A DNA stretch of 64,000 bases, taken from Monocercomonoides exilis PA203 (lineage: Eukaryota; Protista; Preaxostyla). Each line of letters begins with the position of its first letter. The first letter of the stretch is position 1. The notes under the pieces are model-generated. The model saw nothing but the letters and a program-made list of their open reading frames with translations. It did no database searches and was not told where the DNA came from. The stretch is from positions 2,108,001-2,172,000 of the forward strand of contig LSRY02000004.1 in the NCBI GenBank assembly GCA_001643675.2. Direction: 5' to 3'. Positions 39,768-56,500 of the stretch are shown piece by piece. A program made the translations under genes and the position numbers.

Positions 39768-42700
39768 TTATAGTGAAGCTTTTTCGATTCTGGCAAGACA
39801 CGACTTCGCATGCTGAGCAGCAGGCGATCCGTCCCACACCTCCATAATGTTCTCGAGCACTTCATTCACTTCTAACTTTCCTAATTCTCTTGCATGAGCT
39901 GGCGTAGCTGCAATGTTCATAAGGCCAAGCGTTGCAAGCTTTGCAGTTGCTTCGTGCTCTTCTCCGAACACCTTCAAAACCTTAAGAATGGTACGGGGAC
40001 CGTCCAATGACATGAACGAAACAACATTATCCTCTGAGGAATCAATTTAGTCACAAACAGTGTCAGTTAAAAAATTAAAAATAATAAATTAAACAGTAAT
40101 ATATGTGAAAAAAAAAAGATATTTACAAACCGCATTTTGTGATCAAATTCACAGTTGCAGCAGTTGCTGATTCGATAAATACTTCCTCTTCCTCTTTTTC
40201 TTCTTCTTCCTCCTCCTCTTCCTCCTCTTCATCATCACTCTTTTTATCATTCTTTCGAGATGAAAGTTTTGTACCTTCTTTTTCAGCTCTCTTTATTTCA
40301 GTGTTTAGCACAGATACCATCAACTTTACTGCTTCTAATCCATTAAGAGTCTTCTTTGCAGTTGGATTAATTGCCAGTTTTCGAAGTGTTTCGCACGCGC
40401 TTGCAATGAAATCACAATCTTCATCTTTCACGCTCTTTTCGGCATTCTTTTCATTCATAGCATCTGCAGACGATTGCACATTTGCAGAAGAAGACTTAGA
40501 ACTAGATGAGCTGTTTGCAGAATAAAAGTCCTCGTACATTTTCCCATTCATATGCAGTTCAAGCTTTTTCAAGCCAATCTGTATGATTTTCAGAAGTTCT
40601 GCAAGCAAATCTGATTTTTCAGTGGCAATTCGATCTCTAATGTCGTTTTCAGTGAGAAGGTTTCCGAGAAGCTGAAGAGCAGCACGAAGCGCAGTTGATG
40701 TGGATCGAGACGGAGCCCAGAACATTTCTTTGCTTTCGGCTGCTTTGCTGCTTGTGATAATCTCATGCTTCGAATTGATTTCTGCGAAAAACACAATCAG
40801 AAGCTCAACAACTCCATCATCAATTAGCTGATCCAAATTTCCATCGTCAAATGCAATGTTCAAAAGAGTCATGAAGCACTTCTGTGAAAGCATCTGAACA
40901 AATGTTGGAGTAATCTCGAATTGCGCAGGATTTGTCGTAGCATCAGCATCATTTCTGTCAGCAGAAGAGGACGAAGCAGATGATGAAGAAGCTGAACGAG
41001 TATTACTTTGAAGTGTGAGAGATTCTTTGGTTGGATGAATTAAAAGATTTAACAAAGAAATGATAAGTGCAATTCCACCGGCTTCGACAATTTCAGCACT
41101 GTTAGATTGATCAACAGCTAAGTTCACCAGTGCATCAACGATACTCATAACAACTCGGTCTATTTTGCCCTTTTTCTTTTCCAGGACTCCAAGCAATGCA
41201 TCAACAACTTTCGCTTCTTCGATCTGCTTCTGATACTCATCTGTTTGTGTCAAGTTGATAATTACTTTGATTGCAGAAATGGAAACTTCCTCTTCAATCA
41301 TCAGGTGAACATTCATCAAGCGAATAATCTCTGAAAGAACTGCTTTTTCAGCAAGTACCTTTTTGTGATTGTCTGACAATGAAAGAGCTACAAATATATC
41401 TGCAACATTTGCAACAACAGACGTTTCATTCAAAGTGAAAGTCTGCGCCGCTTTCAGAAGCAATTTGACCGAATCCTCCGTTGCGATTGACTTCAGAACT
41501 TCGTCTGTTGATGAAATGTGCTGAAGGAAACATGTTGCATCACAAACGATGGCTGAATTATCCAAATTCGAAGAAATGGCATCAAGGGACAATTTGGCCA
41601 CATCTTCAGTTGCCAATGCATCCATTGCAATCTGAGAAACTGTCATGTTTCCAATCGCATGGAAGATTCTTTCAACAAGCGTCACTTCTTCTTCCAGCTG
41701 GAGATTCTTTTCCACTTTTGTCAGATTTTGTTCTGATGATTTGATTTCTTTGATGGCTTTGCATGCATTTCTTCCAAGCGTTACAAGAGACTTATGAGCA
41801 TCCTCCTTAACTATTTGATCAGATCCATTGGGCATCCAAGCAATGTTTTGGAAGATTGAAACAAGAATGCGAGTGAGAGAGTTCTGCTCCTTTGAAAGAT
41901 AGAAATGCATTGCAGTTTCAACCATCTTGCAGAATTTCGGAATTAAAAGGAATTCATCTGCAAGTGTGCAATCGCTCGTAAGGTTCAAAATAACAGTGGC
42001 AACAGTTCGATAGACTCTCAGAAGCAGTGTCTCATGCTGCTGGAGTAGGTGAACCATTGCTTGGACGAATGGATGAGGCGTTTGCTTTTGCGAAGAAGAT
42101 GACGAGGCTGATGATGCATTTGATTTACACATCGCACCAAACCTTTCTCTGTTTGTGCTTCCAAGTGACAGCTGAACAAGAACAGCAAGAACTTTTGATA
42201 AAATGGACACATCTTCATTATATGCATATTTCACAACGCAATCAGTCAATATTTCAATTCCATTTGATTCGCGAATAATCACCTTATTTGGCTCTTTTTC
42301 TCGGACGCTCCAAATGATGTGGCTGCCATTCTTCAGTAAAACTTGATCTTGTTTGTTGAACGATTTTATGAATTTCAGAACAATTGGAATGCCTCCTTCC
42401 TTAACAATTCTCTTCAGATTATTCACACGATATGTCAGAATTGCTAAGGCATGAATCAGCTCGCTTTGAAGTTCTGACGGTGCAGAGTCAGCGCTTTGCT
42501 CAGAATCAGAGTTTTGGGCGATGCTCTCTTCCATTCGCTTGATAATTAACCTAATAAGTTCTTCATCATCCAATGCAGCTGTATTCAAACGATTCACCAA
42601 AAGAGCGAACTGCTCTCCAAAGTTTTCAAGAGCTTCTAATAAATCGTCTTCATTTGTTCCTTTCAGTGCTTCTTTCAGTTGCATAATTGCTTCAACTGAT

Positions 42701-45700
42701 TCCTCGCTTCCGAAATCGCCTTCATCTTCTCCTTCGTCATTCACATTCAGGGTTTCGCACAACGTTCCGCAATTGTGTTCATTCATAAATACGGCATGTT
42801 TCTTCCTAATTGTCTGTCCATCTTCACCTGTCCAGAAGCGAACGTCCATCGTGGCAGCAGCACATCTCACACATTCAATGCCTTTTTCCGATGCAACACC
42901 AATTGCAGTGTCAACCAACATCTCATTCCCCATTCTGTTCAGCACAAAGTGCTGGAATGCATCCAATAGCTCGTTGCTGGCCTTGCATTGATTGATCAGA
43001 TAATGAGATGATGAATCAGACTCAGACGAAGAAGAGATAGACAATGGGCTACTCGCCACACGAAGCAAATCAACCTTGTCTGTGTTGACAGAAAAGAACA
43101 TTGGAGAGCCAGCTCGTTCAGAAAATTCAACAATTACAGCCTCGCTAATGAGGATTGGAGAAGGAGGATTAAGCGAGTTAAAGTTTGAAGCAAGTGAGGC
43201 TATCATCGAGTGAGTCTTTGCAGCGCACAGATACTTTTGAATCTGCTGAACGGTTTTGAATGGTCCTTGAACAATCCAATTGCTTGGTGCGCTGTTAACA
43301 GGATCTTTCAAAACCAACTTCCGCAGCTCAAGATTCTCACTCTCGCCAAGTTGATTGGATAGAAGTGTTGCACTGTGCTCGATGTGCTCGAAGAGCTTCT
43401 TTGAAACATTGTAACTGTGGAATGTGATCTTCTCTTCTCGCTCATCAAATGCGAAGTTGGAAACCACCGACAAATCAAATGAAAAGCCGAGCTTTGCCAT
43501 TTCTTCCTGCTGTTTCTCTTTCATCTGCAGAACTTCCATTTCGAGCATATTTTGATACTCCTCATCTTCGGAGCTTTCTCTTGAAACACTTTTAATTTCT
43601 CCACTTGTTGCCATTTCTGCTGCATCCATTCCATCGTCAAATGAACTTGATGTTTCGCGCTTTCGCACAACCCTTCTATTCCTTTTGTGCTCAGGCGCTG
43701 CTTCTCCTTCATCTTCCTTTGATTCCTGCGCCTCTTCGACAACTTCCTCAGCTTCTGGTTCTTCCATTTCTTCCTCTTCGAACTCCTCATATTCTTCAGG
43801 CTCTCCAATCTCCACAAATGCAATGTCTCCATCCTGCAATGATTCCTCATCGTCTATCTCAAACGGATATTCCCCTTCAAACTCTCGTTCATCCTCGGAA
43901 AGCGTCTCGTCGTTTCTTGCCGGATCGTTTGGAACACGTCTCAGCCACTTCTTCCCATTTTTGAATACGATTGCCCTGTAATCCACGCCTTCTTCTCCAG
44001 GTGGAGAATCTGAGTAGATGAACTCTTCTTCTTCAGGAAGAGGAGGTGCTTCTGGAATGAACATTCCATAGTCAGGAAGCACATCTGTTGTAAGTATCCG
44101 CTTATCATCCACTCCTTCAACTTCGTCATAATCCATCGAAAACTCAAGTTGGTATTCTTTTCCTTCTTCAAACATATCCTCTCCGTCAATGTAATCTCCA
44201 AGCTCACCTTCGAACTCTCTTTCTTCTTCGTCCAAAGACATATCATGGAGAAGAGGATCATCTTCTTTCCTTCTCAGCATTTTTCTGCCTTTGCTAATAA
44301 AAATAATTCTCAATTCAGTTTGCAAATTGTCTTCGTTATATTCTTTCCCTTCTTTTATTGACGAGCCCGAAGATAATGACGGACTTTCTTTCGATCTTTG
44401 CATCTGTTCCTTTCTTGCTTGTGTCAACGACTCAATAGGTTTGACGCTTCCGTCCTTTGTTTTCTCTCCGATAGCAATTAGTGGAGTGTTTGTAGAACTG
44501 GATGACTTTTGTTTGATTATCGTTTTCCCTCCCATTCCTTTCGCCACATCGTATGTGGGCACAATCTGCACTTGATATTCTTTGCCTTCAACAAATGTAG
44601 ACTCACCAGGAATGGCTGTGATGAATTCTCCTTCAAACAGACCTTCATTTCCTGGTAGGCTGCGAAGTGGATCATCAGCCTTGCGCTCGAGCATCTTTCT
44701 ACCATTGCGAATAAGAATTGTGCGTGTTTCAGGAAGAACTGTATTAATACCAAACGTAACAGAAGAAGTATCTTGAGTGCTCCTTTGAGATGGAGATGCT
44801 TCAATATCTTTGCGAGATGTTGTTGCCTGTGTGATAAGAATCTTCTTGTCAATTCCTTCTCGTTTCTCGTAATTCTTTTTCATTGTCACAGGATACACTT
44901 TCCCTTCTTCAAATGTATTTTCTCCATCAACATAGTCAATAAGTTCTCCTTCTATATGATCATCTAAAACTGCAACTGCAACTGCACCTCCAGCTTTGCC
45001 TGCAAATGCATCTTCGTTTGAGTTAATAAGCATTTTCTTTCCATTTTTGATTGCAATATGTCTTTCTTCAACTTCGTCAATGTTCAAAACAATATCAGAA
45101 GCGGAAGAAGAGGTGGTAGCGTTTGCTTCTGATTTTGCAATTGCATCATCAGTCTTTGGAGGATGCTCTCTTTTCTCCAATCGAATAACATCTCCGTGCA
45201 AAATGGTCTTCCCTCCAACTCCAACAGAAGATTGATACAGCGGATCAACCATCACCTGATAAGACATTCCTTCACGAAACTTGTTCTCTCCATCGATAAC
45301 TTCGACATATTCTCCTTCAAACTCTCTTTCCTCTTCAGTAAGAGATTGATCGTGCTTTTTCGCATCATTTTCCTGTCTGCGCAGCATCTTCTTTCCGTCC
45401 AGCACAACAATTTCTCTCATTTCTGGCTCCACACATATTGTGGGTGTTCGGTTGCTGCTCTGAAGAATAGCCTCTCTCCGCTTGATTGCATTCTCTGCGA
45501 TTGCTGCTTTGCTCCTGGCACGATATCGCTGGATGTATAGCTGGTTGTCCTTCATCCTCTTTCGTTTTGCTGCCAGCATACGACGCCTCTTCGCTTTCTG
45601 CTTGTCTTCCAGAGATTCAGTGTCTTCAATCTGCTCCATCAGAAGCAAATCAACCTCGTCCATTGAATACTCACGCACAACAGTCTTCTTTTCAACTCCA

Positions 45701-48700
45701 CAGCCAACCTGATAGAACGGGTCAAACAAAACATTGTACTCTTTCCCTTCCTCAAATTTTTCTTCTCCCGGAAGATATTCTTCGACTTCTCCTTCAAATT
45801 CTCTTTCATCTGCGCTCAATGAAGCATCCAAACGTTTTGGATCATCAGACTTTCTCTTCAGGAACTTCTTTGAATTCCTCACAACAATAGTTCTCTCTTC
45901 TTTTTCTTCTTCTGGCAGTGGCTCGCTTGGAATGTCGTACACAAGCACAGTTGAGCCAGCAATACCTTTGGCGGGAAGAAATGCGGGATCAACCACAATT
46001 TCGTACTGCTTTCCAGATTCAAAGTTCTCTTCCCCTTCAATTGCGTTCACATATTCTCCCTCAAACACTTTGGTAGAATCCTCCGCTGTTTGTATCTTTG
46101 CTGCCTCTTCTGGAGTAATATCCTTCTTTGCGAGCATCTTCTTCCCATCTACCACTTTCACCACACGCGTCTCAGGAGCCACTCTGATTGACGGAACAAA
46201 CCTTTGCTTATCTCGCTGCTTCCATCCGATTGTCCTCGGTGCAACAGAAGTGGAACGAGGCCTTTGAGAAAGAGAACGAGAGAACGAAGATGTCAATGCA
46301 GGAGACATCTGCGAAGAGCGTTTTGAAAGCGAAGGAGATGTGCCCAACGCTTCGAAAGGAAGAGGAGATTGAGAACGGCGAAATAGTCCTCCACTCCGTG
46401 ATGTTTGCTTTCCTTGTCCCTGGTTGGAACGCGCCTGACTATCGCTTCCGCTGCTAACAGAGCTAAGAGGCAAGCTATAAGTACCATCATCATGACTTGC
46501 TTCTTGTGTTACGATGCGTGCTCCTTCGACACCCTGTGCTTGTCTGCATTTGACACTAAGCGACACTTGATATTCTTTGCCTTCCTCAAACGAGCATTCA
46601 CCAGGAACATAATCAACAAGCTCTCCTTCATACAGCTTCTGTTCTTCACTCAATTTGGGAGACTCAGCCTCTGCATCGCCTTCTTTTCTCTTTAGCATTT
46701 TTTTGCCATTGCAAATGACTATTGTACGTTCTTCAGTGGATTCGAGTATATCTTTCAACAAAGGAGATTGATCGATCAAAGAAGGCGATGAAAAAGGAGT
46801 AGATGTTGATGATTGAGGTCTCACAGATTCTGAAGCAGCAAGCACCGCAGCGGAAACCGACGAGGCGCCGAAAATAACTGGCTTGTTGTTCAGTCCCTTG
46901 ACAATCTCGTATGTCGGATCCACCATCACTTCATAAGATCTTCCTTCTTTCAGCAAATGTTCTCCGCAGAGCACCTCAATCACTGCTCCTTCAAACTCTC
47001 TTTCGTCTTCGCTGAGCGTTTTGTCATTTCGCAATTGGTCATTTTCGCGGCGGCGCAGCATCTTTTGCCCATTTTTGATGACAATTGTGCGAGGCTCTGC
47101 AACGACGCAGTTGGAGACAGAAGGAGAAGGCTGAACAGAAACTGCACTTGCAGCTGCTTTTGAGGCAGCATTAATCACAGGAGTGGAAGCAGCTTTAGAC
47201 GCATCCAGAATTTGGGACACATCAACGAAAGCAACTGCACTCGATGAAGAAGATGCTTCAGGTTGATTTGAAGCCGAAGATCCACTGGCAGAGGCATTTT
47301 CTGCGTCTGATTGATCTTTGCTCACTATTTCCTGTGCAACCTGCGGGCAGCGTCGGGTTAGTGCAACAACTTCTTCTTGTTTTCCATTTGCATCTGTTTG
47401 CACTCGCTTAACTGGGAAGTAGTCATTTTTCATCAGTACTTTGTATTCAGCTCCTTCAGCAAAGCACCCTTCGCCTTCGATGTAGTCAACAATCTCACCT
47501 TCAAATCTCGCTGAGTCAGAAACAGCAGCTTGTTTCTGTTGATCAGATTTCACAAGCATCTTCTTTCCGTTTTGGATCACAATCGTCCTCAACTCCTCAG
47601 CAAATGGAACAACAGCAGCAGGCTCAGATTTTCCGCTGAGAGCTGATGCATGAGGTTGGATGGTCTCATCAATCTGAACTTCTTTTGTTTGAATGACTTT
47701 CTGTCCTCCAACACCTGTCTTTTGTGCATATTCAACTGGAATATACACTTCATATTCATTTCCTTCAGTCATCTTATCTTCATTTAAGATTGGCTCAATA
47801 TAAACACCTTCAAACTTTTGCTCTTTTTCTGTCAGATTCAACGATGAATCATTCAAAACAGGGTCATTTTCTCTTCTTTTGAGGTACTTTTTCCCGTCCT
47901 GCACAACAATTGTTCTTTTCTCCTTCAAAAGTGTTGTGTCTCTTTGTTGAGCATTCACTATTGCTTGTTCCTGAATCTGTTGTGCTTTCAACAAATTCTT
48001 CTGTTTCAGTGCCTCCTCTCTCTTCAAAGCTTCAGGCGTGGCAGTGAAGATAACTTTGCCACCAACTCCCACTTTCTTTTCCATGTCTGAAGGAGAGATA
48101 ACAACAGTATAAGTCTTTCCCTCTTCCATACTTTCCTCTCCTTCAATATGATCCACATATTCTCCTTCAACATACTTTGAAATGTCGCTCTTTGATGCTT
48201 TGATCTCATCAACATTGGCTGCTTTTGAAAGCAGCATCTTTTTTCCATTCATAACAATCAGAGTTCTTTCTTCAGGTGGATAGCGGATTTGAGATGTCTT
48301 CAATCCAAGTTCTTTTCGTTCATCTACTTCGCCTTCATCCGCATTCTCATTGCTGACTGCTGAAGCATCGTCGTCCATGTACTCATCATTCACTGGACTT
48401 GTTTCCCAGTCATCTTTGCCCAACGATGACAGAAACTGCGATGCCAGAAAATCATCAGCTGCTCCGTTCCCTATCACCTCCATCAAATGATCATCTGCCT
48501 TTCGATCAATCGTAATAACCGTTTTGTTCCCCACACTTTTGCGCAGCTGCATATCTTGGTCTCTGATATTCACTGGATATGTTTTCCCTTTCTCGAACAT
48601 TTCTTCTCCTTCGATGTAGCCTGTGACTTCGCCCACATACTGCTTTTCGTGCTCAGAAGCAGACTGATCCAAGAGCATCGGGTCATCGTCCTTTCGTTTC

Positions 48701-51700
48701 AGCAACTTCGCTCCACTTTCGCTCAGCTCCACATTGCGATAATCGCTGCCTTCCTTCATATCACTTGGCAATGGAGTGTTGAGCACTTGCGGATAAGCAG
48801 ATGGCTTGACACCTTTGCTTTCAGACGCAGATGCAGAAGCACTCGAAGAAGAGCCTCCTTCGTATCTTCTTCTCAATGCCTGCACTGTTTCATCCTTCAC
48901 CAGCTTGCACACTCCCACAACTCCTTTTGCTGCTCCCCACAAATTCTTCCAGAAGCCTGGATCTTTCGGTTTCTTCTGAATGATGTTGACATTATTAGCA
49001 CCCTTGTGGATCTCGTATTGTCTTTCATCCATTTTGATCTTGTATTCCTTCCCTTCTTTGAATTTCTCTTCACCATCGATGTATTCAACAAATTTCCCTT
49101 CGTATTGCTTTTCTTCAGCTGAAAGAGAGTTATCGTGTCGTTTTGGGTCGTTTTCTCTTCTCTTCAGCATCTTCTCTCCATTCACAATGACAATTTTCCT
49201 GTCTTCTTCTTTTGGAGTCTTCGCTCCTTTCTTCTCAAGCTCTTTCTGCACTGATCTTGCTTGAGACTTGCAGGATGATAGAGACGGAGAGTATTTCCCG
49301 TGTGGTGTAACAGCAGGTGTTGACGAGACATCCGCTGGGTGGTCAAATGGCGTGTGTGGCTGAGACTGCGGAGGATGGATAATCACTGTTGCTCCTCCAA
49401 TGCCAGACATGGTCGAGTAATCAGGCTTGATCATCACTGGATATTCTCTGCCTTCCTTAAACTTCTCTTCTCCTTCAATGTATTCAATGTATTCTCCTTC
49501 GAACTTATTCTCTTTCTTTTCTTCAGCATTATTTTCCTGTGAAATACCGCCTTCTTTGCTCTTGAGCATCTTTTTGCCGTCAACAACAACAATCATCCGC
49601 TTTTCTGGAACAGCAGCAAACTCCATCTGTGCTGAAGAAGGAGTCGAAGGCACAGAAGACAGAGAAGGTGACATGAACACATCTGATGACTGTTGCTGTT
49701 GTTGAGGCGCAGAGGTTAGAATTGTCAGAGAAGGTGGAAGATTCGGAGATTTCTGTACATCTATCGATGAATCTGAAGTCTTTGAGGCAGATTTCGCAGG
49801 AACAAGCGAAAAAAGAGAAACAGAAGATTTCGTTTCTTGTGTTCCTTTGGCCTCTTTTCCAGCTTGATTTTGCGCTTTCATTGAAGGAGATGTTGAAGGT
49901 GATGCCATTTTCTTGTTGACTGCATCTGTCAGCTTCATCTCTCCCTTTGCTGCTTCTTCTTCCATCCCAACAACACACAGCGGCCGACGAAACACAACAA
50001 CAGTCTTTCCATCGAGTCCTGTCTTTTTGTAAGACGATTTGGGGGCAGTCACCTGATAGCTCTTCCCTTCCTCGAACTTGTCTTCTCCGAATATGAAGTC
50101 AGTGATCTTTCCTTCGTATTCTCTTTCTTCTGCTGACAGCTTCGTGTCTCTTCGCTTCGCGTCGTTCAGCCTTCTTTTCAGCATCTTCTTTCCTCCCACC
50201 ACAGAAATCGTGCGTGTTTCTGTCTGAGTGCTTGGAGTAGGTGGAAACGGAACAGGAAATGGTGTTCTCGGCGTTGTAGGAGAGAGAGGCGTCATCGGAG
50301 TGAGCGGAACCAAAGGAGAGTACGAATACAGCATCTTCTGCCTCGCCAGCTGCATTTCCTTCTGTCTCTGCTTCAAAATCTGCGTCTGTCGCGCTTTTTG
50401 GAGCTCGGGGCTCGAGATCAACAGCTTATGCTGCTCGGATTCCTGCATAAAGCGCATCAAACGCTCTTTTTCCAGCGGATTCGGGCGAAGAACAGTCTTT
50501 CCGCCAGCTGCAGGCTCAGAAGACAAATGTGCAGGGAGCAAAACAGGATACTCTTTGCCTTCTTCAAACGTGTCCTCTTTCTCAATAAAGTCCAAATATT
50601 CTCCCTCAAATTCTCTCTCATTGGGGGACAGTGTTTGGTCATTGCGCTTTGGATCATCTTCTTTGCGCTTCAGCATCTTTGCTCCGTTTTTGATCACAAC
50701 AATCCGTTCTTCTGCTGTTCCTTCCTTCAGCACAGGCGGTGACGGCAGAGGAACATCTTTCATCTGAGGAGTATGCTGATACGAGCGGGCTGATTCACTC
50801 CATCTGCTCTTCCGCTCTTCTTCTTCCTCTTCCCACTGCGCCAATTCTGCTTCGTATTGAGCATAACGCTTTTCTTCATTCTCGACCTCCTTTTTGTACT
50901 CTTCCATTTTGGTTTCGTACTCCGACGTCTTTTTCTTGAACATTTCAGCTTTCTCCTTTTCCCTCTCCAGCAGCTTCTCGCGCTCTTCTTTCATCGCCTT
51001 TGCCTTTTGGATTTCTTCTGCTGAAGGCAACTTGATAGATGGAGAAGACGGGACAGAAGATGGTGTGACTGAAGGAGATTCACCTCCGGCACTCTTCTTT
51101 TGAGTGGGAAGAAAGCGGAACATCTTCTTTCCTCCGACATGTTCGCATTCTTCATATCCACGTGGAATGGACACAATGTAATCTTTGCCTTCTTCCATTG
51201 TCTCTTCTCCAACGATGTACCCTCCATATTCTCCTTCAAATATTCCCTTTTCTCCAAACGGCTTCTTCTTCGGGTCGCCGTCTTTCCTTTTGATCATTTT
51301 CCTTCCTTTGCTGATTGTCACCACACGTTCCTCAGCTGTTGTATCACCTGGTGCACATTCACTCCAATGTGCTGGATGATCTGGCACACCTCCTTGTCTT
51401 ATCAGCTTTGCCTGTGTTGAGTGTTCTTTTTCATCTGCTTCTTCATTCTTCTCCAGAAGTATCGTCCCTCCTTTCGATCCAAGCACTTTCATTGGTTTGT
51501 ATTGTGCATTTATCGTCACATCGATTTCTTGTCCTTCTGCCAGCTTCTCCTCTCCTGGGATATACTCACCCCATTCACCTTCATATTTTCCCATTGGACC
51601 AGGAAATCTCCGCTTGGGATCGTCCTCTTTCCTCATCAGCATCTTCTTTCCGTTGTTGATGGCAATACGACGTGAAACCAATCCATCTCCAGTGGAAGGA

Positions 51701-53130
51701 GACAAAGAAGGAGAAGCGGAGGAGCCTGATGAAAGCACTGGCGAGGCTGAAGAGGCAGAAAGAGAAGGTGAAGATGAAGACGATGCAGTTGCCTTGTCTG
51801 CTTCTTCGACTGCTTTCAGCACAGCTTCAATCTCTGGTGGAAGTGGCTGTGCAACAATCGTTGGGGGAGGCGATGGTGGTGTGGGGGGTCGCGGGGGTAT
51901 TATTTCTTTTGGCTCAAATATTGGTTCCTCATCTGCATATATATCTCCGTTCAAACCAGCTTCTCCTCCGGCTGCCGATGCAGAAGCAGATGAATCAGCA
52001 GAGCCTTGCTGAGGCCCCCTTCGCAATCTTGGTCTTCTCCTTGCAAACTTCAATATGTTATCAGAAGGTTCGATTTCCTCCTCTTCATTTTGCTTTTCAG
52101 ACATTTCGATCCTTCCTTTGTCCATTCTTCCTCCTCGCCTTGCTCTGGCTGCACCAACACGAATCGTTCGTTTCACTCTGCGACTGTCATCATCTTCAAC
52201 TTCTTCATATTGAATTGGCTCTGTTTTCAAAGGAGTAGGTGCTCCTCTTCCTCTTCCAACACCTCGTCCTGCTGCTCCTCCTTGTTCGACACCAACAACT
52301 TGTCCAGATCCTCTTCCAGTACCTGCTCCAACAATTGCAACGATTGAGCGAAACTTACCGCTCATCACGCGCACCCATCTCCCGTCCTTTTTCACCCAAC
52401 GTGCTCCAGTTCTTGTTCCAGTGATTGGCTTTAGGACTTGTCCAGTTGCTCCGTAAAGCTTTGCTCTCTCTTTGACGGATAATCCGGATATTGAAATAAT
52501 ATTGGCGCGAGGCTTAGGAGCACCAGAAACAGAGCCAGGAACAGATGTTACTCGGCTTACTGATAACTTTATTGGTTGTGGTTGTGCTTTTTCCTTTGGC
52601 AAAAATGCCAATGGATGCTGTTTATCGTATTGCATTCCATTTGCTATAGCTTCTATAAATATATCGTGCAAAATTAAAGTTAAATATTGTCTTCTGTGAA
52701 TTACAAAACTATTAACAAACCTTCATATCCTTTATCAGAAAGCAGGCCACTTGATTTTAACTCAGCTAAAAGTCCAGAAAATAGTTCAAATTTTAAATAC
52801 TAATAATAGCACATACATTCAGATGCTTTATAAAACTCATTTGAAATGAAGGTTGCCATTTTTAGTGAGACTCCACAACTGGCAACACGTGAAAGAAACA
52901 AAAGACGCTTCTTTGGATAAACATATCTATCTCTAAAATCTGTCATTGAAGTTGCGCATCTAGCGATACATTCTGCATAAAAATCAGGTTTATCGAGTGC
53001 ATCCCAGTCAATTCCAACAGAATGTACCCATTCTGATAAAATATGTGTTTTAAAGAGAACAAATCATTATCAATGAAATATCAAAAATAACGAAAGCCAT
53101 ACGAGAATCGGGCTTTGCGTTCGAGGTCAT
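39768..53130 (-). CDS. Giant (~4,370 aa) protein: 19 copies of an unrecognised ~75-aa domain, an alpha-kinase-like pseudokinase and ARM repeats
   Basis: 4182-aa ORF plus three small 5' exons (ATG 53130) and a final exon (39768-~40034), joined by phase-compatible GT-AG introns. The repeats and motifs are read directly from the translation. Confidence 0.85.
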
Positions 53131-53597: not shown

Positions 53598-56500
53598 CTA
53601 CTTTGAGATATTCAAAGTCTCCAAAATTTCGAATTTTCTCTCGTAAGTCATCAAATCAAGAAGAAACATGGCGGTTGAGTCTGCAACGCTGCTTGCAAAT
53701 GGAATAAGATGAGAAATTTCCGTTTGTGAAGCATTTTGTTCCTGTTTGTCTAGCAAACTCAGAAGCAGCTGAGAAGAAGCATACAAGCCATTCAAAACAT
53801 ATCGGCGCGATGACATCTTCTTTTGGGGCAGTCCAGTCCAAATGGCATTCTTTTCACTCTGTTCTTTCTTTATCTTCCTGTTTCTTTCTTTCTCTTCTTT
53901 CATCGACTGTTTGATTGCCATCTTGAGCTGATACTCCTCATCATCAAATCCTTTGGACGCATCCACACTTCCATCAAAGTATGTCTCTTCGCTTTCATCT
54001 GAGCCATTTTCTGAATCACTTTCTTTGCTGTTGCTTTGCTCGAATTCTTCTTTTGTAGCCAAATATTCAGATGAGTCTCTCAAAAATGCCTCTTTTATCT
54101 TCTGCTTCACTGCATCAGATGCAAATTGATACAAATGCACAAGCAGAAGCTCTCGTACTCCTATTCCTGCTGAAAGTGCAGCCTGTTCTTTTTCATCCAA
54201 CACTTTGTACAGATGTTTTTCTTTGCTTGCTTTTCCTTCGCTAAGATTGTTTGTAGAACTTGCAGAATTTTCACCAGAAAGCATCTGCAAATCATCTTTT
54301 TGTTTTTCATCGACAGAAGACAGAAATTCTCTCACTCGCTCAGCTGTGTCCACTTCATTCCTCCACTTATCGAATGTCTTGTTCAACAAAACTGACGCAT
54401 AAAAGCCGAATGCGGCAATTATTCTCAAATCAAATGACAGCTCCGTTGTGTTGACTGGTAAAGGAGAAGTGAACGGAACAAGCGAAGAAGGCGACTGCAC
54501 AACAGCTGCATTTGTTGACTGTTTTCTCTCTGGGAAGTCTTCTCGCAGCAGAGGGAAGAACAAACGATTGGCGTAGGCAGAATGAGGGGACGTGGTGTGA
54601 TGAACACATCTCTTTGTTTCAGAGCATGTGCAAACACTTCCCACACGCTGCACAAACTGCGGGGCTGAACAGATCGGAGTCTGAGGACTGATCAAAAAGC
54701 AGGTTGAAACCAACGGTGAACGGGAAGAACGATCCAAAGAGGGAAGCAATGAGGATGGGAGATATGAAGGCTTGCACAGAGATCGAATGGTGTTTAGATA
54801 ATTGTTGTCAACACACAAAAGCGCATCCTTTGAATGAGCAGAATCCAATGAAGATGATTCTGATGATGCTGATGATGATGTGGGGAAAAGATTATTCTGT
54901 GCATTTTGAATAAGACGATCCAAATGATGAGTTGGAACCGAAATCGTTGTATGAATAAGATCAGGTGGTGTGGAAAGTTCCAACGAGAAGAATTTGACTC
55001 CAATCAACATCCTTGCAAATTGCTCTTCAGCAGACGATGAAGAAACAGCAGATGAAGAGCTCTTATTGTCTTTAACTTTGTTCTGTGGCTTCTGCTCTTT
55101 TGAAACTAGCTTCTCCGTCCCAACAACATCTGCCATTCCCATCTCATCCAAAAGCTGTTGCTTTTGCTCCATTCGCATTTCTGTGCTTCCAGATCTGTTT
55201 GCTCCTGTCTCGTTTTCTTGCACTTCTGCCAGGCTGCCAAAGCCACGTTCTGGATGATGAACTGAATCAGATGGTGAAGCATTTGCACTTTCAGTTTCGT
55301 TTTCACCATTTTTACTTCCAACTTCGATGTCAGTTGGTGGCTCAAAGAGTGAATCAGTAATCACAGGGCGAGCGCGGAAATCTGGTGGCTCTTTAAGTTC
55401 TTGTTCCTCTTCAGTACTGTTAATTCCTTTATTCGAATAAGATGAAGCCGAAGATGGAGATGATGATTGAGATTGTGTAGAATAATTTGAATAAGAAGAA
55501 GGTTCCGATGGAGGCGGTATTGGACGAGGTCTGTTTGCCTGGGGATTCATCATTGACTGCGCAAGCGATGACTGATATTCTTGATTCATTGAATTTCTTG
55601 TTGCACTTGCGACAATTGATGCTGCAACCATCGCTGCCTGCATTCTCAGGCCAGAAAGCTCATCATCTTCTTCCTTCAAATCTCCAGCAGCTTCTGTTCC
55701 TGCAGGTGGCTTGTATGTCTCAGAAGCACTCAAAGATGAGGAAGAGGTGCGAGAAGAGGATGGGCCTATGTGAGGGATTCCTTTTGCATTCGAACGTGAA
55801 TTCGCAGTCTGGTTTGTCTTTCCATCAAACAATGGATTCTTTGTGAAGGCGCCACTGGAAGTGCTGCTGTGATCAACAGAGCTCGAAGAAGATGAGCTAC
55901 AACTTGACTTATTTTTATTCTGTTCATATTCAGTACCTTCTTTTGAATGCTGAGTAATAAATCCATCCTTCGTGATGTCGACATTGTACTTCGCCATCAG
56001 GTATTGACCCAGTGCTTCAATGATGTCGCTTGCGAGTGGGTCGTGCTGATCAACAAGCAGCGACAGCACAGACAAGCAGCGGAGCCTCACCTGAAGCGGA
56101 TAGATGCTGCTGAGCATTCGCAAGCACAGCGTTGAAATGAGCTGAAGTGTCTCATACTCCATCTTGTTGACTAATTCAATGCCTGTTGTCACATCTATTG
56201 AATTGATTACTGCATTGTTGCCTTCACTCACATTGAACAGCACAATGCTATCTGCACAGAGCGAAGGCACTTCCTCTTCCTCATCTTCTGGTGACTGAAG
56301 GTTCTTCTTCTTCCTTTCTTCTTCCGATTCAAATCTTTTTACCTCGTTCTTCATCATCACCCACTCCTTCACCACCAGCTCAATTATGTCCATTGCATAG
56401 ACAGCGCTGTGAAGAACAGATGTTTCGTCCCACATCGCATAAGCGAGTGTGTACACGCTGCTCTCTCCAGTCAAATTCTTCAGCATATGCGCAAATCCGG

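Follow-up and report, generated by a model that had tools for sequence, protein, structure and literature searches.

Does a giant gene of Monocercomonoides exilis PA203, a gut protist that lacks a mitochondrion, encode a protein kinase that has given up catalysis, and if so, what has been kept of it? The locus lies in a window of 64,000 nucleotides (GenBank assembly GCA_001643675.2, contig LSRY02000004.1, positions 2,108,001 to 2,172,000), the whole stretch of DNA analyzed here and the source of all coordinates below. Within it, a minus-strand open reading frame (ORF) of 4182 codons (40123 to 52671) encodes a domain with an alpha-kinase-like fold. An earlier inspection of the sequence (the original prediction) had proposed a catalytically dead alpha-kinase domain at 42740 to 43400, acting as a scaffold. 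Our analysis gives good support to an alpha-pseudokinase that belongs to a conserved, oxymonad-only clade. The best overall explanation, to which we assign a probability of about 0.85, is that a divergent alpha-kinase fold has lost catalysis and been kept as an interaction module.

Residues of the domain are numbered 1 to 301 along 42652 to 43554 on the minus strand, and the corresponding ORF residue is obtained by adding 3039. The features on which the argument turns are as follows.

42742 to 43449, minus strand: alpha-kinase-fold domain, ORF residues 3075 to 3310 (Pfam, PDB profile, AlphaFold, and fold comparison).
43267 to 43269, minus strand: Gln96 (ORF residue 3135), probable position of the ATP-binding lysine, at the end of the predicted strand NWIVQ.
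43006 to 43056, minus strand: Ser-rich, low-complexity hinge loop (four-sequence alignment).
42949 to 42951, minus strand: His202 of DAFQHF, first zinc ligand, counterpart of His742 in MHCK A (alignment with the AFSHF histidine of MHCK A and eEF2K).
42898 to 42918, minus strand: degenerate catalytic strand LVDTAIG, equivalent to IVVDIQG of MHCK A (HMMER alignment to MHCK A and eEF2K).
42862 to 42870, minus strand: VRC where MHCK A has its T-D-P motif, Thr765-Asp766-Pro767 (HMMER alignment).
42757 to 42777, minus strand: H-N-C-G-T-L-C zinc knuckle (HMMER alignment).

The four peptides quoted in the original prediction are all present on the minus strand between 42742 and 43191 in a single frame: ASNFNSLNPPSPI at 43153 to 43191, ERAGSPMFFSV at 43087 to 43119, DAFQHFVLNRMGNEMLVDTAIGV at 42895 to 42963, and FMNEHNCGTLCETLNV at 42742 to 42789. 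The interval proposed for the domain takes in most of it, but its start drops about 16 residues of the first beta-hairpin.

A phmmer search of 1.84 billion representative proteins returned only three relatives at E < 1e-10, and all three are oxymonad proteins. They are KAK2955592.1 of Blattamonas nauphoetae (P0001; 3297 amino acids, 39% identity over the domain) and two proteins of Streblomastix strix, KAA6384134.1 (P0002) and KAA6385911.1 (P0003), with 30% and 26% identity over the domain, respectively, and both from partial records. All are deposited only as hypothetical proteins. The domain type is already known, and the Blattamonas protein carries an automatic UniRef label, "Alpha-type protein kinase domain-containing"; our literature search found no paper linking alpha-kinases with Monocercomonoides, oxymonads, or Preaxostyla.

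Homology to alpha-kinases was evaluated first against the Pfam family Alpha_kinase (PF02816; curated cutoff, 21.3 bits), the profile hidden Markov model search that had been suggested as a check. The isolated domain scored 24.4 to 25.6 bits (E = 1.5e-5 to 3.5e-5), and Alpha_kinase was the sole credible Pfam family for it. Scores for the four oxymonad domains (25.6, 31.3, 33.5, and 31.3 bits) all exceeded the cutoff. The entire ORF of 4182 residues scored 18.2 bits, under the cutoff, and routine whole-protein annotation could therefore miss the domain. A single-sequence search of the PDB was likewise weak (eEF2K, E = 0.04), and a profile of the N-terminal lobe (N-lobe) alone matched no alpha-kinase in the PDB. 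These three results are what could be said for a chance match of short motifs. Against them, the profile built from all four sequences matched MHCK A (E = 7e-7) and eEF2K (E = 6e-6) in the PDB, followed by an Entamoeba alpha-kinase and TRPM7, and nothing beyond the alpha-kinases was significant (all others, E > 0.5).

Fold comparison led to the same family. A first AlphaFold model of all 301 residues was poor, with a predicted local distance difference test score (pLDDT) of 60.8 and a C-terminal lobe (C-lobe) below 50, and nonetheless matched alpha-kinases only. A trimmed model of 239 residues reached a pLDDT of 81.1 and a predicted template modeling score of 0.82, and all five models had pLDDT values of 77 to 81; the models were built from only four sequences. 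With VIA-align, residues 5 to 239 of the trimmed model superposed on MHCK A with Z = 18.5 (203 residues; root mean square deviation, 2.9 Å), followed by eEF2K (18.1), the Entamoeba alpha-kinase (17.1), TRPM7 (15.8), and ALPK1 (15.0), so that all alpha-kinase families with a solved structure were matched; the best structures outside the family, conventional kinases, reached only 7.0. In Foldseek, the first 44 chains were all alpha-kinases (best E = 2.8e-12, TM = 0.68). Both methods yield aligned ranges and not residue pairs. Among protein language-model neighbors, 28 of 30 were Alpha_kinase clusters (top score, 0.96). Profile, fold, and language-model searches thus return alpha-kinases by a wide margin, and the PDB profile and fold comparisons refute the chance match, which we regard as practically negligible. 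We consider the fold and homology settled: the domain at 42742 to 43449 is a genuine, very divergent alpha-kinase domain, modeled as bilobal and with a predicted zinc-stabilized C-lobe.

The comparison with MHCK A (PDB entries 3lkm and 5e4h) and eEF2K (7shq and 8gm4) shows what has been retained and what has changed. The bilobal fold is shared across the whole domain (about 205 residues aligned), as are three motifs (F-N-x-x-x-P-P, A-F-x-H-F, and H-x-C-x-x-x-C), the zinc-ligand set, and the Gly that follows the catalytic strand. Two of these motifs had been recognized by eye, and the alignments bear this out: FNSLNPP aligns with FNQKKPP of MHCK A and YNRHKPP of eEF2K, and DAFQHF aligns with QAFSHF. 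In contrast, identity to the oxymonad domain is just 15 to 19%; the catalytic Asp, the Gln, the Thr-Asp pair, the Lys-x-x-x-Asn motif, and the loop Asn are missing from the oxymonad domain, as the ATP-binding Lys probably is; 3 to 4 residues are inserted after the catalytic strand, and M. exilis has in addition the Ser-rich hinge loop. The position of the oxymonad domain also differs, in the middle of a protein with a repeat array on one side and an ARM solenoid on the other.

The catalytic positions were assigned with MHCK A numbering taken from the PDB alignments and anchored by the mutant chains 5dyj (D663A), 4zs4 (D756A), and 3lmi (D766A), whose substitutions fall at the expected alignment columns and are named in the entry titles. 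Columns list the residues of the four oxymonad sequences, with M. exilis first. In the catalytic strand, TAIG aligns with DIQG, so that the catalytic Asp (D756) is replaced by T216 (T/K/T/S) and the metal-binding Gln (Q758) by I218 (I/V/I/I); the Gly after the strand (G759) is G219 and is invariant. VRC aligns with T-D-P, with V229, invariant, for the Thr (T765) and R230 (R/M/S/I) for the Asp (D766). Both losses had been foreseen in the original prediction. T-D-P can be placed less securely than the catalytic strand, as the insertion of 3 to 4 residues lies just upstream, and in M. exilis no conserved acidic residue occurs within 3 positions of V229 and R230. The K-x-x-x-N motif has S183 (S/R/G/D) for the Lys (K722) and an invariant I187 for the Asn (N726), and the loop Asn of F-G-x-x-N (N781) is replaced by E244 (E/Q/Q/D). 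The counterpart of the hinge Glu (E713) is V156, N157, or V161, according to where the gap is set, and none of these is acidic.

The ATP-binding lysine (K645 of MHCK A, K1646 of TRPM7) is probably replaced by Gln96. In the AlphaFold model this residue closes the strand NWIVQ, which leads straight into the long N-lobe helix, and its column reads Q/H/R/K. The proposal that IVQ stands in for the VAK motif fits the spacing and the predicted secondary structure; because the N-lobe gives no sequence alignment, the assignment is one from spacing.

A shift of register that would make D215, the Asp of LVD, catalytic was ruled out. Its column reads D/E/G/K, the invariant Gly already occupies the place of the canonical Gly, and on the strand D215 faces the same side as the invariant Ala217 and not the cleft. 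Neither outcome named as refuting the original prediction, a missing fold match or an intact catalytic position for the Asp of LVD, was observed: the fold match is strong, and this Asp is E, G, or K in the relatives.

The weight of these losses can be gauged from TRPM7, in which activity falls to <1% with any one of K1646R, K1727A, N1731V, D1765N/A, Q1767N/A, T1774S, and D1775A, and to about 2% with N1795A (PMC4197629). Shared motif spacing and register suggest that K1727, N1731, D1765, Q1767, T1774, D1775, and N1795 correspond in turn to K722, N726, D756, Q758, T765, D766, and N781 of MHCK A, for which the PDB entries of D756A (4zs4) and D766A (3lmi) carry "inactive" in their titles. At least seven positions that are essential in TRPM7 are lost together, which makes it very unlikely that the domain can transfer phosphate by the canonical mechanism.

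Several points nevertheless weigh against an inactive domain or against parts of the evidence for one. The assignment of Gln96 and the register of D766 rest on indirect alignment, and one Streblomastix paralogue (P0003) bears a Lys at the putative ATP-lysine position. A Glu occupies the Q768 position in three of the four sequences, and conserved polar residues of unassigned role occur outside the canonical set (K53, E211, D237, and an Asp or Glu at 162). Some supposed pseudokinases have later proved to be catalytic through other residues or other chemistry. Finally, the RNA evidence for the locus, given below, consists of contigs and is compatible with DNA carry-over. The paralogue with the Lys and the conserved polar residues would suit an active enzyme with a noncanonical residue set, be it a kinase or a catalyst of different chemistry. 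However, the essential positions are replaced in all four sequences, mostly by hydrophobic or nonconserved residues, and D215, the sole nearby Asp in M. exilis, is not conserved; we therefore regard an active enzyme as highly improbable.

The zinc ligands, in contrast, have been kept, as the original prediction had read from the M. exilis sequence. His202 and the knuckle residues His260, Cys262, and Cys266 (MHCK A His742, His794, Cys796, and Cys800) are invariant in all four oxymonad sequences. The C-lobe zinc module thus keeps its set of His, His, Cys, and Cys ligands and is predicted to bind zinc.

The domain might also be a decaying relic that has no function of its own and is carried along inside a large protein. 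The lost catalytic residues and the low-complexity insertion in the M. exilis domain are what such a relic would be expected to display. In contrast, the four-sequence alignment has 35 columns without variation among the three genera, the four zinc ligands among them, and all five AlphaFold models agree on a compact fold. Conservation of the domain is also at least as high as that of its flanking ARM region: in the comparison with Blattamonas, 36% of aligned positions are identical over the domain and 43% over the C-lobe, versus 31 to 32% in the ARM region and 27% in the preceding linker. The Blattamonas and Streblomastix relatives have the same catalytic losses and the same zinc site and do not have the Ser-rich insertion. 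A relic is, if anything, slightly less credible than an active enzyme.

We therefore return to a conserved pseudokinase, in which the domain would have been retained as a folded, zinc-braced, noncatalytic binding module. A partner may dock in its interlobe cleft or on its C-lobe surface; the module would sit next to the ARM solenoid, where it would terminate a long, beaded tether.

A related reading is that the pseudokinase has kept the ability to bind a nucleotide or another small ligand between its lobes and serves as a conformational switch or sensor and not as a passive scaffold. Many pseudokinases retain nucleotide binding, and in our model both lobes and the hinge are well defined and overlay alpha-kinase structures with bound nucleotide; A-[IV]-G is strictly conserved on the strand that faces the cleft, and neither E211 nor D237 varies. 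However, the equivalents of the residues that hold phosphate and metal (K-x-x-x-N, the Gln, Thr-Asp, and probably the Lys) are all replaced. In M. exilis, the Ser-rich loop also lies at the hinge, where it adjoins the upstream side of the expected K-x-x-x-N site; it is 9 to 13 residues longer than in the relatives and is disordered (pLDDT < 50 in both AlphaFold models). Ligand binding in the cleft is thus unlikely, if worth serious consideration.

For the noncatalytic module that we prefer, a precedent exists in animals. To our knowledge, human ALPK3 is the only pseudokinase described in the alpha-kinase family. It was the first alpha-family pseudokinase to be published, has a scaffolding role in which it organizes myomesins at the M-band, and keeps the catalytic Asp while departing from active kinases at four conserved residues (PMC9698156). 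Like the oxymonad protein, ALPK3 combines an alpha-kinase fold that lacks the expected activity with repeated small beta domains in a large protein, and it is proposed to organize structural partners instead of phosphorylating them. By this analogy, a scaffold role may be inferred for the M. exilis domain, akin to that of the ALPK3 pseudokinase in organizing M-band proteins. The likeness is one of function, as the two are not orthologous and the library-wide search recovered oxymonad relatives only. They also differ in that the oxymonad domain has lost the catalytic Asp together with six or more further essential positions, and in that the inactivity of ALPK3 was shown by experiment whereas that of the oxymonad domain is read from sequence. 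Judged from the residues replaced, the oxymonad domain is far more degenerate than ALPK3 and appears to have arisen independently.

The oxymonad clade thus presents an alpha-kinase fold stripped of essentially the whole catalytic apparatus and yet conserved, with its zinc site, across genera, and it offers a natural test case for noncatalytic roles of this fold. The practical value is modest: any automatic "protein kinase" label on relatives can be corrected, and the boundaries of the domain suggest a defined construct for biochemistry.

The domain is also a recognizable landmark in a giant and otherwise unannotated protein, possibly a component of the cytoskeleton, which in oxymonads is unusual. 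The gene and the remaining parts of the protein are laid out as follows.

40123 to 53130, minus strand: whole gene (ORF list, translation, and GT..AG introns in the 5' sequence).
53103 to 53130, 52817 to 53032, and 52721 to 52765, minus strand: three short 5' exons (exon-by-exon translation compared with the Blattamonas N-terminus).
53033 to 53102, 52766 to 52816, and 52653 to 52720, minus strand: introns of about 50 to 70 bases each (GT..AG).
40123 to 52652, minus strand: one giant exon (exon model).
43792 to 51684, minus strand: array of repeated units of about 70 to 75 amino acids plus linkers, with the motif ...NGKKMLKRKEDDP...EGEY...GEE.FEEGKEY... (translation and motif count).
43450 to 43791, minus strand: acidic linker, helical in part, that joins the last repeat to the alpha-kinase-fold domain (translation).
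40312 to 42684, minus strand: helical ARM-like repeat region after the alpha-kinase-fold domain (best Pfam stretch, 40798 to 41727).

The predicted exon model gives about 4272 codons and a protein of about 4270 residues, which consists of an N-terminal domain, the small-repeat array, the acidic linker, the alpha-kinase-like domain, and the ARM-like solenoid. The 5' exons, translated one by one, match the N-terminus of the Blattamonas orthologue. The approximately 90 residues that they encode (52653 to 53130, minus strand; including DFRDRYVYPKKRLLFLSRVAS) are well conserved between the two proteins and form an unannotated N-terminal domain. In the linker, the first AlphaFold model predicts a helix at residues 2 to 21 of the 301-residue piece, and the linker has no match in Pfam. 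The ARM-like region matches PF24768 (ARM_ARMC5) at 50.4 bits (E = 2.6e-13), below the family cutoff of 79.9, and PF00514 (Arm) weakly at 17.4 bits (cutoff, 20.6); the Blattamonas orthologue scores higher for ARM_ARMC5 (69.8 bits). A poly-Glu tract lies near the C-terminus (40150 to 40240, minus strand).

Pfam, the PDB profile, and fold comparison agree on an alpha-kinase domain located between the repeats and the ARM region, as originally proposed. The combination of repeats, pseudokinase, and ARM repeats had been put forward as an architecture without a recognized counterpart; the layout is borne out, but it is not unique to M. exilis. The Blattamonas orthologue is colinear with the M. exilis protein through the repeats, the kinase-like domain, and the ARM region, and the two have the N-terminus in common as well, which shows that this architecture is conserved in oxymonads.

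Long strings of small domains with a single kinase-like module also characterize giants of the titin, twitchin, and obscurin type, in which a kinase or pseudokinase stands near the C-terminal end of the domain array. The resemblance is one of analogy. Those proteins use conventional protein-kinase domains and Ig and Fn3 repeats, whereas the M. exilis protein combines an alpha-kinase fold with ARM repeats and a repeat not described before. We speculate, as a doubtful extension of the interaction-module reading, that an ancient alpha-pseudokinase, evolved independently of ALPK3 and with a cleft that still binds a ligand or a helix of a partner, could act as a hub for regulation or mechanosensing in a giant cytoskeletal tether specific to the lineage, such as one in the axostyle or preaxostyle apparatus. 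If so, protists would have their own equivalent of the signaling nodes formed by titin kinase and ALPK3, assembled from unrelated parts.

The domain is single copy in M. exilis. A six-frame Pfam search of the genome assembly (82,301,135 bases in 101 contigs) recovered it at 23.7 bits and gave no second alpha-kinase match. In Streblomastix the dead alpha-kinase domain occurs in two diverged copies, versus one in M. exilis, and in the protein P0002 it is followed by a long helical region.

Other searches for relatives added little. A word-index search with the query restricted to the domain gave no match, and one with the family profile returned only P0003; a scan of metagenome contigs with the same kind of profile produced 158 pattern matches, none of which was confirmed. 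Two further candidates were set aside. P0004 is a repetitive protein that was matched 19 times on one short stretch, and P0005 has only a short FWTGEDG-like motif in common with the domain. In the latter (701 residues), the C-lobe loop was matched four times within residues 260 to 301, with FWSGEDGETISGKH resembling FWTGEDGQTIRKKH (E = 6.5e-4), probably by chance.

Four RNA runs, all from one study, gave contigs that match the genome colinearly over 40240 to 45216, with no differences or gaps. Such contigs document presence in RNA libraries and not strand, level, or transcript ends. All of them end at 40240 because the poly-Glu tract was skipped as a repeat in read matching. In all four runs, contigs also contain a joint between 44589 and 45312 that skips 722 bases and has 401 other letters in between, and loose contig ends occur at 43701, 45336, and 45894. 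The joint is probably not splicing; it and the loose ends most likely reflect contigs of other repeat units, or misassemblies induced by the repeats, that cross-match short stretches.

Upstream of the giant gene lies a separate gene on the same strand (53600 to 54200, minus strand), with its stop near 53600. About 470 AT-rich bases separate this stop from the start codon of the giant gene.

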